Source: Dimorphilus gyrociliatus (lineage: Eukaryota > Animalia > Annelida). Taken from it: 64,000 nucleotides of DNA. The stretch lies in the NCBI GenBank assembly GCA_904063045.1, contig CAJFCJ010000003.1:1798001-1862000 (forward strand), written 5' to 3'. The position numbers were made by a program, and so were the translations under genes. Of the stretch, positions 25,388 to 38,806 are shown piece after piece. Every line of letters begins with the position of its first letter. The stretch's first letter is position 1. A model generated the notes under the pieces. It was not told the DNA's origin. It saw only the letters and a program-made list of their open reading frames with translations, and made no database searches.

Positions 25388-25502
25388 GACAGAAAATATA
25401 ACATAATAGAATTAAGACGGTTCTAGTCTGAGCTTGCCTTTTCTGTTAAATCAAAATAAAATTTCATTTTATGCAATTATTGCAGGCTGTTACTACAGAG
25501 TA

Positions 25503-28500
25503 ATGTCAGATACAAGTACACATAAAAGTTTCGATAGTGACTTTCCTATACTGGGACTTCTGCCGAAGAAAGAAACGGGGGCTTGGCAATTTTTAAACAA
25601 ATATCCCGAATACGATGGAAAAAATGTCACCATAGGTATTTTAGATTCTGGAGTTGATCCAGGGGCGGCTGGATTACAAAAAACGCCTGATGGTCGTCCT
25701 AAGATAATTGATATAGTAGATGCTACTGGCTCTGGTGACGTTGATGTTTCCACTACAGTTGAGGCTGTTGATGGAACAATCACTGGTTTAAGTGGCAGAA
25801 AGTTGAAAATTCCAACATTTTGGACTAATCCTTCGAATGTTTATCATATTGGAATAAAATCGTCTCTTGATCTCTACCCTAAATTACTTAGAGAGCGACT
25901 GTCGACAGAATATAAGAAGAAGATTTGGGATCCTCAGCATAGGGAGAAGTTAGCTGAAGCTGTCAAAAAATTGGAAGACTTTGATCGTGAACCCTCCGTG
26001 GAACTCTCGCAGGAAGAAAGAGAAATTAGAGAAGATTTACAGCATCAGATAGATGTTTTGAATTCTACTGAAAAAAAATATAACTTTCCTCCAAAAATAT
26101 TTGACTGTGTTGTCTTTAACGATGGAAAAGTTTGGCGGTAATTAACCTTTATTGACTATACATAAATTCCACATGTATACATATGTATGTAATATAACTT
26201 TTTAGGGCTTGTATGGATACCAGCTGCATAGGGAAGTTGGAAGATTGCTCACTAATGGCATCATATTATGAGGAAAACCAGTATGCAACAATAAGTGCTT
26301 TAGGTACCTAAAATATCAAAAATAGGAAGTATGCTAAATATATTCTCTCTCAGATCAAATGAATTATAGTTTCAACATTTGGAATGATGGTAATGTGCTG
26401 GAAGTGGTCACAAATGCGGGATCCCATGGGACTCACGTAGCTTGTATTGCAGCCGGATATTTTGAACATGAACCAGAAAAAAATGGTATTGCTCCAGGAG
26501 CTCAAATTGTTGCAATAAAAATAGGAGACTCTAGATTAGGATCTATGGAAACTGGTACAGCCCTAATTCGAGCGATAATTCATTTGTCAAGAAAAGGTGT
26601 AAAATTGGCAAATTACAGTTATGGAGAGGGGTATTTGTGGCCCAATGCTGGTAGAATCAACGAGGTGATTGAAGAATCAGTTAGAGAGAATGGACTAGTC
26701 TTTGTATCATCTGCAGGGAATGATGGTCCTGCTTTAGGGACAGTTGGATCGCCAGGTGGGACATGTAGTTCAATTGTAAGTGTCGGTGCTTACGTTACTC
26801 CTGAAATGATGAAAGCTGAATACTCACTTCGAGAGTATCTTCCTCTAATGCATTATACATGGAGTTCTAGAGGTCCTGCTGCTGATGGTGCTCTAGGCAT
26901 TAGTATCTCTGCACCTGGAGGAGCAATAACTAGTGTCGCCAACTGGACACTAAAAGGTATTTCTAATATTTTAGTGACGTTAATTTGTCAATATTTTTAT
27001 TGAAGGCTCTGAACTAATGAATGGAACATCTATGTCGTCGCCGAATGCTTGTGGGTGTATTGCATTGATTATGAGCGCTTTAGCAGCCAAAGGGCGCCAT
27101 TGCAGTCCATATGAACTACGACGCGCTCTAGAATATTGCGCTATTAACGAGTCAAGTCAGAATTTCGACAAATTTGCAGCTGGTTTCGGAGTTGTTAAGG
27201 TGGAAAAAACATTTGACTATTTACATAACGTTTTGAGTCATAGAGATATTTTGATGGATATTAACTGGCATGTTTCGGTAACAATGCCAAAATCTGGTTC
27301 AAACTCACCAGGAAGAGGTATATTTATCCACGAGCCAAATCAGGCTTTTAAGCGCACTGAACACTTTGTTTACGTAAAACCTGAACTTCACGGCGAAGGC
27401 TTAGAAAAGGAAAAAATAAATTTGTCAGTCCATGCTCGATTGGTTTGTGAAGAATCTTATGTGAAATCGCCTTCCCATATTGAATTAATGAACACTGGTC
27501 GTGGATTTTATATTCAAGTAGATCCAACAGGACTAGAGACTGGATGCTACTTGACCGAGCTCAAAGCTTTTGATTGTGATAATGTAGAAAGGGGGCCATT
27601 ATGGCGTTTACCTATAACTGTCATAGTTCCTCGTAAAGTACCAAGCTGGAACTACAGTCAAGAAAACATTTCTTTCCAACCAGGAGAAATCCGTCGTCAC
27701 TTTTTCGTTGTTCCCATTGGCGCAAGCTACGTTGGTTAGTATATAAATTTTTTTCTAAAAGCCCGCCACACAATTTCTAAACTTTATCAAACAGAAGTCC
27801 AATTGACAAACACTTACGTGAACTTAAAAGAAAATCCTCACCAGCGTCATTTTGGGGTAGTAGCTATAAAAGAATTGGCTGATGGAGGAAGAAAGCGTAA
27901 AGCAAGACGATTTACAATAGCGGCAGGTGAAACTATAAAGCTACCTAATATTTTACGTCGAGTAGGTGTAAGGTTTAAGTGTGGCGGGCTAAAGCTTCGA
28001 TACCAAATTTGAATATTGTCAGTCAAGTTACTTGCAAACAGAGGTGAAAATTTCGTCAAACCACAAAGAAAATTCACTAAAAATGCTCCTTCATGCTGTA
28101 CAATTTCATAGTTTTTCAACAAAAAGATTATCACATTTTCTATCACTGAATCCGTTAGCAACGGCTGATGATAATTTTATTTTGATTAATGTAAGTTATA
28201 GCTCGCCACTCATCGACAAGGCTATGAATTTCAATAATGTTTTCATATACTTTAGGATAATTCAACAATTGAAATAACCATTGCTAGATGGTGGGCATCT
28301 TTGGGGAATGCTACTCTATCCTACTCCGTTCAATTTAGAGGAGTGATGCTGTCATCTAAATCATTTACTCTTCATGCTGGTGCGCCAGCCCTACCAATAG
28401 ATATTAAGTCATACTGTCCAAGAGCTGAAGAGATTTCACCTAACGTTACCCTGCGTTTTTGGGAGCAATCTCTCAAACCAAGCTCGTTTAAGATTAGAAC

Positions 28501-29824
28501 ATTGGATTCAATACGCGATTGTGTAGTCCCATACAAACGCCAAATTTATGGTTTGGAATTGATATATAAACTAAATATTGATCGCACGACCGACGTTGTC
28601 ATAAATTTTGCCCCACTTTCTTCTTTATTGTACGAAAGTGATTTGGAAAGTCAGTTGTGGATGCTTCATGACGCGGCCACAAAGGTGCATATTACGTCGG
28701 GTGATGCATTTCCCTCAGGTTATTCGAAAAAGTTAGACAAGGGTGACTATTTATTGCGTCTCCAAATTCGACATGAGAAGCAGGATATTCTCGAAAAGCT
28801 TAAAGATTTGACAGCAACAATACAGTTAAAACTTCATTCTAACATAACGTTAGATTTGTACTCAGATACGTCAGGCGCCTTGGTTAATTCTAGGAAATTT
28901 CCATCTTCAATTATTTTACCAGAAGGTGAAAGCTCAACTTTCTTTGCTGCTCCTCCTAATGATGAGAAAATATCAAAGAACAGTGGTCGTCTACTCGGAA
29001 GCCTTACCTTGTCACGAGATGAATCAATAAAAAAAGCTGTAAACTATCCCTTTTATTATGTAATCCCAAATGGTAAAAAAAATAACAAGAGCACACCTGA
29101 AAAAAGACTGTCGAATGAAGAGGCAAGTAAAATCTTGATGGAAGCTGAACGAGACTGTCGAATAGCTCACCTGCGAAAGCTTGAGGACCCATTACTTTAT
29201 TACAACGAATTATGCATAAAATATAATGACTATGTTCCTTTACATTTAAGTTACTTGCAAGGAGTAGAGGCTAATCCAAATGTTTCATCGGGACACATTA
29301 CAGATGTTTGTACGAAGGCTTTAGATTTGATAGACAAGAATGAGGTATTAATAAATATTGGTCTTAAAAATGATCAACGACCTGATGCTGCCCGAATAAA
29401 AGCTGACACTGAAACGAAAAAGCTGTGGTTGATTGAGCTTTATATAAAATTTTCAAGCAGTCTTTTGGATTCACTCGAGAAAGTAGATAACGATATACTA
29501 CGAATTGAAAATCAGAATTCTATTGAACTTATGAAGAGTCAGTTGCATCAAAGTATTCTAAATTTAATGTCTTTAAGCGATTCTTCACAGGACCAACAAA
29601 CAGGTCAAGTTATTGCTCGCTATGCTTCTTATAAAAGGCTTTATGGAAAGTCACTCAAAATTTTATTGAAGATATTTGAAGAAAGATGTGCTGGTCAAGA
29701 CTCAAATGATCTTGAAGTGAAAATCATTAGTCTTTGCAAAAAATGTGACTGGAATCATTTAGCAAATTATTATGAAGATTGGAGAGTCTATAAGCATCCT
29801 AAGGGGCCGTATAGACCTTTTTAA
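25503..29824 (+). CDS. TPP2: Tripeptidyl-peptidase II (subtilisin S8 family), multi-exon
   Basis: Catalytic triad motifs [17 protein letters not shown] and [11 protein letters not shown], plus IARWWASL and the C-terminal TPPII domain. Short GT-AG introns, e.g. 26957-27005 (49 nt). Confidence 0.96.
27795..27967 (+). CDS. TPP2: Candidate mutually exclusive alternative exon A of TPP2 (paralog of exon B, 28042-28190)
   Basis: A 60-nt intron (27735-27794) precedes it. It starts phase 1 with E-V like exon B and ends phase 0 at donor GTAGGT (27962) or GTAAGG (27968). It is open in frame and flanked by a perfect 12-bp inverted repeat. Confidence 0.7.
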
Positions 29825-30041
29825 ACGTGCAATCATGTATTTGACAGCTTTGTAATTTTCTGAGAATACATTTCTTGAATCAATACAGCTAAATCGTTAA
29901 AAAATGTATTTAAAAATTAAATGAATAGCGATAAATACTAACACGCATGAATTTTTTAATCGGAAACTTTGGTGTTGTGGTTATTATTTTGGGATCGAGA
30001 ATATAGTTATTGTTCCATTGAGAATGAATATCTTAAAGACT

Positions 30042-31598
30042 TCACATGAACGGGTTAGTCGAATTAGTTGGTCTAGGATTTGAAGAGTTGTTAAAATTTT
30101 GCTGAAAGAATCATTTGGATAAAGTAGAGAAATTGATAAGGTATTTCAATTACCATAAACGGATTGGCTGAATTGCCGAATTGTTGAGGCTGTTGGGCCT
30201 GGTATGGCGTATTCCACTGAAAGTTGACATTGAAGTTTTGCTGCGACTGGATATTTGACATAAATGGGTTTGCACTTGGGATAGATGGGACTGACGGAAT
30301 TTGACTTGAGTTAAAAGGGTTAGCTGAAAATAAAACAAATGTTTTCCAATCTTACAATATGAAAAAAATTATAATGTAAAACTCACTAGCGTTTGTTGTA
30401 TTAAATGTTGATACAGTCTGATTATTAGTTTGAGGAGGAAAAGTACTACCATTATTAGCTCCAAATCCTCCAGGAGCAGAGTTAGAAACAGGAAAGGGAC
30501 CTGAATTTTGTGATGGAATGGTTGAAAAGTTGCCGAAAGTCGATGAATTTGTCCCACTAAAATTTGTTCCTCCGTTTCCATCCCAAGTAACGGATGATGT
30601 CGAACTGAATTCACTGTCTAAGGCTGCAAGTGCAGCGTATTTGTCGCTGGAAGTCATGTTCGGTTTAGTCAGATTTAGTACGTTATGAATATTTTTAGAT
30701 TCCGAAAAGGGTTGGATATTCGCAAGATTGGAAGTTTGCGTAGTGCTTTTGTCGTTAAAAGCGTCAAAATTAGCAAAATTGGCTTCAAACAAGGAGGATC
30801 CATTTGAAGCTAGTAAAAGTAAAAGTAGTGTAAGTTATTGTTCAACAATTGGTTATTTCAATTGAAGTGAACTAACGTGTAACAGATTCCTGCTCCTGCT
30901 GCATGACGGGCTTTGACGATGAGGTCTCCAATTGTGATTCCTGAAAGGGATCTTGCAGATCTGTGATTAAATTTGATGGCTTCTTAATATGATGAGAATT
31001 TATAGAGATGGAAGCTGGTGGAGGAGCTGAAATAGAAGGAAGGACTCTGCTTTGAGATATGGAGCTCTGAATTCCCCCTAACACATTTCTAGGTTTAAGT
31101 TCTCCTGATTTTTCAATAGAATTCATTCTTCGGGCCTCCTCATGAAAAGCTTCAGTTGGAGCTACATACCATCGTTTTTTTTCATATTTGTGAGTCATAA
31201 AATCTCTTAGTTTTTGTTCATCTTTGGTATTAGGCTCCATTGACTTATGAGCATCATACAAACCCAAATAAACTTTTCTGCAGAAATCGTTTCCTCTAGA
31301 CTTCAAAAATTCCATCTCTTCAGTTGTAAATGATGCCATTGAAATGGATTTTACACGATGAGGGGGGTTTAAGCCTCGCCTGTAACAAATTTAACATTCT
31401 ATATACAAGTTAGTTGGCATAAAAATTTTCTACATACACAGTTCCACTACATGCTGTACAAATAAAAGCCCCAATTGTCATATTGACGTAGGTTGGACCT
31501 CGTTGATTACAATCAAAACAATGCTTATTATGAGATAGAGCTGCCATTTCCCGCAACATTTTCAGGTGCTTTTCATCCTGTTTTCTCTTATTCGCCAT
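30042..31598 (-). CDS. AGFG1: ArfGAP domain and FG-repeat protein (AGFG1/HRB/drongo homolog), 5 exons
   Basis: KQDEKHLKMLREM..NKHCFDCNQRGPTYVNMTIGAFICTACSG..RGLNPPHRVKSISMASFT, several NPF motifs, and a C-terminal STNPFM followed by the stop. Confidence 0.93.
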
Positions 31599-31901
31599 CG
31601 TTAAAATATTACTAATTTGTATTTATGTTACTAAAAGAATAAATTTAGATAATTAGAGTGAATATAACAACTAGAATATATTCAGAGGAAATCTTCAAAA
31701 ATCACAGATACCATTTTGGATATGTCGCTTATGGGTTCTATGCAAATCTTTTTCTTGACTTTAAAAAAAATACAAGTTACAGGTGACACCACTGATGTTG
31801 GCGCCAAAAATGTGAAAGAACTTTTTGAGAACAACATCATATATTTTTTATTTTTTTACAGGTTAATAATGTCAATTGAGCAACAGCAGCTGTTAGCAGC
31901 G

Positions 31902-38806
<6,905 letters not shown>

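Follow-up and report, generated by a model that had tools for sequence, protein, structure and literature searches.

Mutually exclusive splicing under docking/selector control is established for exon 6 of insect Dscam1, for 14-3-3zeta, Mhc and MRP1, and, in a bidirectional form, for srp (PMC6071210). In ATE1, the choice between exons 7a and 7b involves two elements, R1 and R4, that compete for a third, R3, a mechanism that has been tested by compensatory mutation (Kalinina et al. 2021, PMC7797038). The tested cases of splice control by competing pairings come from insects and a few mammalian genes, and the locus analyzed here would extend the list to another gene and another group of animals, both new to it. 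The stretch in question (hereafter the window) comprises 64,000 nucleotides (nt) of Dimorphilus gyrociliatus contig CAJFCJ010000003.1 (positions 1,798,001 to 1,862,000 of the forward strand; the positions below are those of the window) and includes TPP2, the gene for tripeptidyl-peptidase II (TPPII). In this gene, a single slot in a galactose-binding-domain-like fold is encoded twice, by exons that we denote A and B. The two probably constitute a mutually exclusive pair controlled by competing RNA pairings, that is, a two-state switch, a reading to which we assign a probability of roughly 0.62.

The gene is assigned to TPPII of a small animal with very short introns through the alignment of the exons on both sides of the slot with Drosophila TPPII (PDB 3lxu). 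The constitutive upstream exon (27003 to 27734, + strand, as are all features described here) encodes the end of the subtilase domain and the first immunoglobulin-like (Ig-like) domain, ends in phase 1 at the donor G/GTTAGT (27734/27735) and aligns with residues 547-695; the constitutive downstream exon extends from 28256 to the stop codon (open reading frame (ORF) end at 29824) and aligns with residues 756-964, leaving a slot of about 58 residues between the two matches. Pfam TPPII families are also annotated on the genes of the relatives introduced below, and exon B fits the galactose-binding slot. We take the domain order of TPPII to be the subtilase domain followed by Ig-like, galactose-binding-domain-like, central and C-terminal domains. 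Between the flanking exons lie a 60-nt intron (27735 to 27794), exon A (27795 to 27961; 167 nt, 56 codons including the split first codon, starting with EVQLTNTY), an 80-nt spacer (27962 to 28041), exon B (28042 to 28190; 149 nt, 50 codons including the split first codon, starting with EVKISSNH) and a 65-nt intron (28191 to 28255). The phase is 1 at the start of each exon and 0 at its end, and because the length of each is 2 mod 3, either exon alone is in frame whereas both together shift the frame.

The identity of exon B follows from comparison with other TPPIIs. A library search with the upstream exon yielded 154 TPPII relatives, in 108 of which the slot between the anchor exons could be extracted; its commonest length is 52 residues. 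A hidden Markov model (HMM) of the slot built from full-length TPPIIs matches exon B of all three species compared here (E values from 4e-9 to 3e-5), and an hhalign comparison of exon B with the slot gives an E value of 2.5e-6. The slot is the core of Pfam family PF21316 (TPPII_GBD, galactose-binding-domain-like fold) in full-length TPPIIs and lies inside PF21316 in P0006. By these profile matches, the canonical TPPII segment is exon B, which forms the core of the galactose-binding-domain-like fold. An earlier reading of the same DNA from its letters alone (hereafter the original prediction) had already assigned the gene to TPP2 and noted that exon B resembles the canonical sequence. It had also placed exons A and B, their phases, the donor at 27735 and the downstream exon at 28256 where reading of the sequence and its translation puts them.

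The search of public assemblies with the downstream exon produced two relative loci, L001 and L005, which together with the window make up the three-species comparison (L006 matches L005 over the overlap that was read, and the compared parts of L002-L004 do not differ from L001). The protein encoded by the downstream exon is only 62-64% identical between the window and the relatives, and synonymous sites over exons A and B are saturated (synonymous divergence, dS, of 0.9-2.3). All three species retain exon A at 167 nt and exon B at 149 nt, both ungapped and with unchanged splice sites and phases. The ratio of nonsynonymous to synonymous divergence (dN/dS) is about 0.09-0.21 for exon A and 0.13-0.34 for exon B, and the two exons contain 0 stop codons in the coding frame compared with 4-8 in the other frames. 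On this comparative evidence, both exons are under purifying selection at the protein level. Given such selection on exon B, this exon would sometimes be read in frame, that is, without exon A.

The introns around the two exons hold three conserved GC-rich elements, one of which can pair with either of the other two. The central docking element D (GTGTGGCGGGCT, 27979 to 27990), located in the 80-nt spacer that separates the two exons, is complementary to both S1 (AGCCCGCCACAC, 27760 to 27771), a selector in the 60-nt intron upstream of exon A, and S2 (TAGCTCGCCAC, 28199 to 28209), a selector in the 65-nt intron downstream of exon B that resembles S1. S1 and D form a perfect 12-nt inverted repeat: the inverted-repeat search found arms of 12 nt, 100% complementary and 207 nt apart. 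The original prediction had described this repeat, with its 9 G or C bases among 12, and had suggested that TAAACT/GGTTTA could extend the helix, which is indeed part of the predicted duplex in the window; it missed S2, the third element, which makes a single stem into a two-state switch. Allowing at most one mismatch, GTGGCGGGC occurs 5 times in the window, against 1.13 occurrences expected, and 3 of the 5 fall within one 450-nt stretch, at 27761 (-), 27981 (+) and 28201 (-).

Both helices are predicted to be stable. Across the three species, the duplex energy is -29 to -33 kcal/mol for S1-D and -25 to -28 kcal/mol for D-S2, compared with -6 to -13 kcal/mol for a control duplex between the intron that holds S1 and the one that holds S2; these energies were equaled by 0-1 of 500 shuffles for S1-D and by 0 of 500 for D-S2. 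The S1-D helix is present in the single-sequence minimum free energy (MFE) and centroid structures as well as in the RNAalifold consensus, such that the duplex postulated in the original prediction is borne out by folding and is conserved in the relatives. When the partition function is computed over the entire segment, the partner of D is S1 in the window and in L005 (probability (P) 1.00) and S2 in L001 (P 0.97); when the upstream intron is taken away, D pairs with S2 in all three species (P of at least 0.98). Thus, D is predicted to pair with either S1 or S2, at -25 to -33 kcal/mol and with P of 0.97-1.00. The D-S2 helix continues over the exon B donor GTAAGTT (28191 to 28197) in all three species; the S1-D helix begins 10-17 nt past the exon A donor and covers this donor in L001. 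Folding of the whole 521-nt segment is no better than that of shuffled sequences (z -0.57), so that the signal lies in the specific helices rather than in overall stability.

The elements stand out from the rest of the introns by their conservation. Invariant in the three species are 12 of the 12 columns of D, 9 of 12 in S1, 8 of 11 in S2 and 14 of 15 in an additional conserved box in the spacer (ATTTGAATATTGTCA, 28007 to 28021), in comparison with 20 of the 82 other intron columns. The changes that did occur within the helices, one compensatory and three wobble-compatible, do not break the pairing. In S1, an A to G change in L001 retains a G-U pair, and in S2, two transitions give G-U or G-C pairs; the compensatory change, in the D-S2 helix, involves the base directly 3' of D and the base directly 5' of the S2 core, which form an A-U pair in the window and a G-C pair in both relatives. 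S2 of the relatives additionally contains one bulged extra base. For the spacer box, no clear pairing partner was found, and its conservation equals that of the pairing elements; it may contain the branch site for exon B or be bound by a regulatory protein. As a separate observation, the cores of the three elements (27761, 27981 and 28201) are exactly 220 nt apart in the window and, read by eye, roughly 205-220 nt apart in the relatives; given this variation, the exact equality in the window is probably a coincidence.

The RNA evidence consists of assembled contigs from two runs of different studies: X1, a coral metatranscriptome that contains a close variant of the locus, and X3, a run labelled as of unknown kind. 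The X3 contigs are spliced at five GT..AG introns with zero depth inside, so this run behaves as RNA. The joints 27733>27794 and 27961>28256 are present in both X1 and X3 and make up an in-frame message of the upstream exon, exon A and the downstream exon; among the X3 contigs, a spliced one spans 27003 to 27733, and another begins at 28256. The exon A form is the major message in the available RNA. A second kind of message is represented in X3 by a 288-nt contig (record 11) that covers the end of exon A, the spacer and the whole of exon B (27933 to 28190) unbroken and is spliced from there to 28256 at a GT..AG intron; in the frame of exon A, this message meets a stop codon at 28010-28012, according to the ORF list. 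The introns at 27735-27794 and 28191-28255 have zero depth, hence the retention is specific to the spacer, which is spliced out of productive messages as an intron and kept in the unproductive one. No joint from A to B (27961>28042) is found among the contigs.

These observations change the original prediction in three respects. Exon A, proposed to be looped out by default, is instead spliced between the upstream and downstream exons in both X1 and X3; the alternative exon A donor suggested at 27967 gives way to 27961, the donor that the contigs use (27967 falls in a stretch (27968-27978) in which both relatives are 7 nt shorter than the window); and the mutual exclusion of A and B does not extend to the X3 message with the retained spacer, which contains both exons but is out of frame. 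Accordingly, strict exclusivity applies only to productive messages.

How the helices would bring about the choice can be put as a simple model, in which D serves as a common docking site that would pair with S1 or S2, one at a time. Pairing of D with S1 would enclose exon A, adjoin or cover the exon A donor and draw the upstream donor near the exon B acceptor, favoring B. Pairing of D with S2 would enclose exon B, mask its donor GTAAGTT and draw the exon A donor near the downstream acceptor, favoring A. By our own count, 59-76 unpaired nt separate donor from acceptor in either state and in all three species, so that a looped-out intron of 294-307 nt would be folded to this effective length. 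The median intron of D. gyrociliatus is 66 bp, and in this species splicing reportedly performs best with short introns (PMC7854359); the effective 59-76 nt would then be the intron size spliced best in this genome. The outcome may further depend on the order of events. The 60-nt upstream intron would usually be removed fast, which would delete S1, let D pair with S2 and give the A form; if the 65-nt intron after exon B were removed first, both selectors would be lost, the spacer would stay and the early-stop, dead-end form would result; the B form would arise only if S1 and D paired before removal of the first intron.

Several points weigh against the two-state switch as formulated here. No joint from the upstream exon to exon B (27734>28042) was found in any run among the assembled contigs, which cannot show rare forms; we infer the B-only message from the conservation of exon B, and, since assembly drops rare variants, this message could still be a minority form. 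The message with the retained spacer has a depth of 165 in X3, against 277 for the joint of exon A with the downstream exon, which amounts to 37% of the depth that continues beyond the exon A donor, a large share for a pure by-product. Furthermore, the S1-D helix is the more stable one in the window and is transcribed first, so that simple thermodynamics predicts dominance of B, yet A dominates; the model therefore needs either kinetics, with the 60-nt intron removed fast, or the action of protein factors. Finally, the covariation by which the original prediction proposed to judge the duplex comes down to one compensatory pair, with all changes compatible with pairing, from only three species and two independent contrasts, which makes this support thin.

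The first two of these points are also the strength of the foremost alternative, which we nevertheless consider unlikely: exon A would be constitutive, and exon B would be included only as part of an extended, stop-containing exon that uses the alternative donor at 28190, a "poison" form that tunes TPPII levels, with the helices setting the donor ratio. The sole B-containing RNA seen is the message with the stop at 28010-28012, which is present at a substantial level, and both relatives likewise have a stop soon after D in the exon A frame. However, exon B retains the canonical TPPII motif (slot HMM E value down to 4e-9), which is not expected of a segment that is never translated. Its open frame is kept at exactly 149 nt under purifying selection (dN/dS of 0.13-0.34), and conservation extends to its acceptor and to the phase in which it would follow the upstream exon.

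Less probable still is the possibility that the GC-rich elements are kept for some other reason, either as sites for splicing regulators or DNA-binding factors or as stems for back-splicing of exon A into a circular RNA. Inverted repeats that flank exons are known to promote formation of circular RNAs (reviewed in PMC11802352), and, most helix positions being invariant, conservation of sequence is inseparable from conservation of pairing in these positions. But no backward joint is listed among the contigs, all changes within the helices, including the compensatory one, retain pairing, and S2 tolerates a bulged extra base, which would break a fixed protein motif. Moreover, a single element has two complementary partners, placed precisely so that the two alternative exons are enclosed. 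The notion that AT-rich introns produced the inverted repeat and the second open frame by chance can be dismissed: although about 9 distinct perfect inverted repeats of at least 12 nt within 300 nt exist in the 64-kb window, S1/D is the sole GC-rich one among them (9 of 12 G or C; at most 3 in the others), which, together with the excess of GTGGCGGGC and the conservation of both arms and both exons across saturated divergence, makes a chance origin unlikely, and the splicing of exon A into messages, the conservation of the arms and the selection on the exons refute it.

Exon A shows no significant similarity to the canonical slot or to exon B (hhalign E values of 0.3-0.44; shuffle z from -0.9 to 1.9), and none of the 108 extracted TPPII slot sequences resembles it. 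For the A and B pair itself, the hhalign E value is 0.44 and the alignment scores are within those of shuffled sequences; the two have in common only how they start (E-V in the window), a similar size and the CAAACAG acceptor. In the absence of detectable similarity, tandem duplication is unproven, and of the "duplicated, mutually exclusive" exons of the original prediction, two same-phase exons for one slot stand whereas duplication does not. Exon duplication followed by deep divergence is a possible scenario. In the protein atlas, exon A had no more than weak leads, which scored below 0.9 and pointed to beta-sandwich families, and exon B had none; searches of solved structures with either exon singly gave no matches, such that the slot profile was needed instead, and a protein-database search with an alignment of the exon B open frames also gave none.

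Two further features of the exons can be mentioned. Exon A contains a conserved cluster of basic residues (27886 to 27912), GGRKRKARR in the window and GGKKCKPKR and GGRKCKPKR in the relatives; in sequence, the cluster resembles a nuclear-targeting or polyanion-binding patch, a speculative assignment. Third codon positions are invariant in the three species at 24 of 49 codons in exon B and at 12 of 55 in exon A, which suggests an additional RNA-level constraint on exon B, and a local hairpin is predicted inside this exon (28121-28133/28169-28181).

Beyond the exon pair, both relatives share with the window the gene order TPP2, a convergent ArfGAP-domain gene and a BRWD/PHIP-like gene (25400-36000 in the window; 3295-13581 in L001; also in L005). 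An X3 contig of 7427 nt extends from the TPP2 downstream exon beyond 30000, probably into the convergent neighbor gene. A search with the upstream exon for transcript fragments that span the junctions recovered nothing but open frames in genomic DNA from L001, L005 and their matching loci, and a protein-pattern scan of metagenome contigs detected no relatives. The DNA pattern composed of D and the spacer box matched 11 metagenome contigs, all by chance: nine of these carry one common sequence, presumably a gene for a LysR-type bacterial regulator, as judged by eye, and two are high in GC.

If the two-state switch is real, the gene is predicted to make two versions of TPPII, distinguished by the core of a single beta-sandwich domain, with the non-canonical version as the main one. 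A literature search found no paper on mutually exclusive exons in TPP2, which agrees with the statement in the original prediction that no such report was known to it. The locus is a compact example of competing pairings, conserved in three species, and since the entire switch takes up about 520 nt, it fits directly into a minigene. It also suggests that a genome with very short introns could still skip an exon by folding a long intron to the preferred length. A broader proposal, tentative and on balance doubtful, combines two parts: that spiralian worms independently evolved either/or splicing driven by RNA structure, reduced to a central docking site and two outer selectors that also mask the two donors, and tuned to a spliceosome that favors introns of about 60 nt; and that the main TPPII of the worm studied here swapped the canonical galactose-binding-domain-like core for an unrelated basic, possibly nuclear-targeting segment, with the canonical version kept for special conditions.

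Comparison with the known systems brings out both the common principle and the peculiarities of the TPP2 arrangement. The worm protein with exon B follows canonical TPPII (Drosophila 3lxu, PF21316) in the order of its domains and in the sequence of the 52-residue slot, whereas the major message of the gene has exon A in place of that slot. Among the cases outside arthropods, mutually exclusive exons of mammalian dynamin 1 were reportedly proposed by Suyama in 2013 to be driven by RNA structure, from conserved complementary intron sequences; this would likewise be a structure-driven exclusive pair, in a different gene and lineage. In human and other mammalian ATE1, exons 7a and 7b form a mutually exclusive pair in which a conserved element of the intron between the exons, R3, is complementary to two mutually similar competitors, as D is in TPP2. 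The geometry is different: R4 is located directly upstream of exon 7b, in the same middle intron, whereas S2 of TPP2 is located downstream of exon B and its helix overlaps the exon B donor. In addition, ATE1 has a 30-kb R2-R5 helix, for which no counterpart is known in worm TPP2, where the entire switch is contained within 520 nt. The insect docking/selector systems share with TPP2 the rule that one docking sequence pairs with one selector at a time, so that the unused exons are looped out and the chosen exon is brought beside the constitutive site. In insects, the docking site lies upstream or downstream of the whole exon cluster, or two sets of pairings exist, as in srp; TPP2, in an annelid-like worm rather than an arthropod, appears to use a single docking site between the two exons, which acts toward the upstream intron as the "selector" of B and toward the downstream one as that of A.

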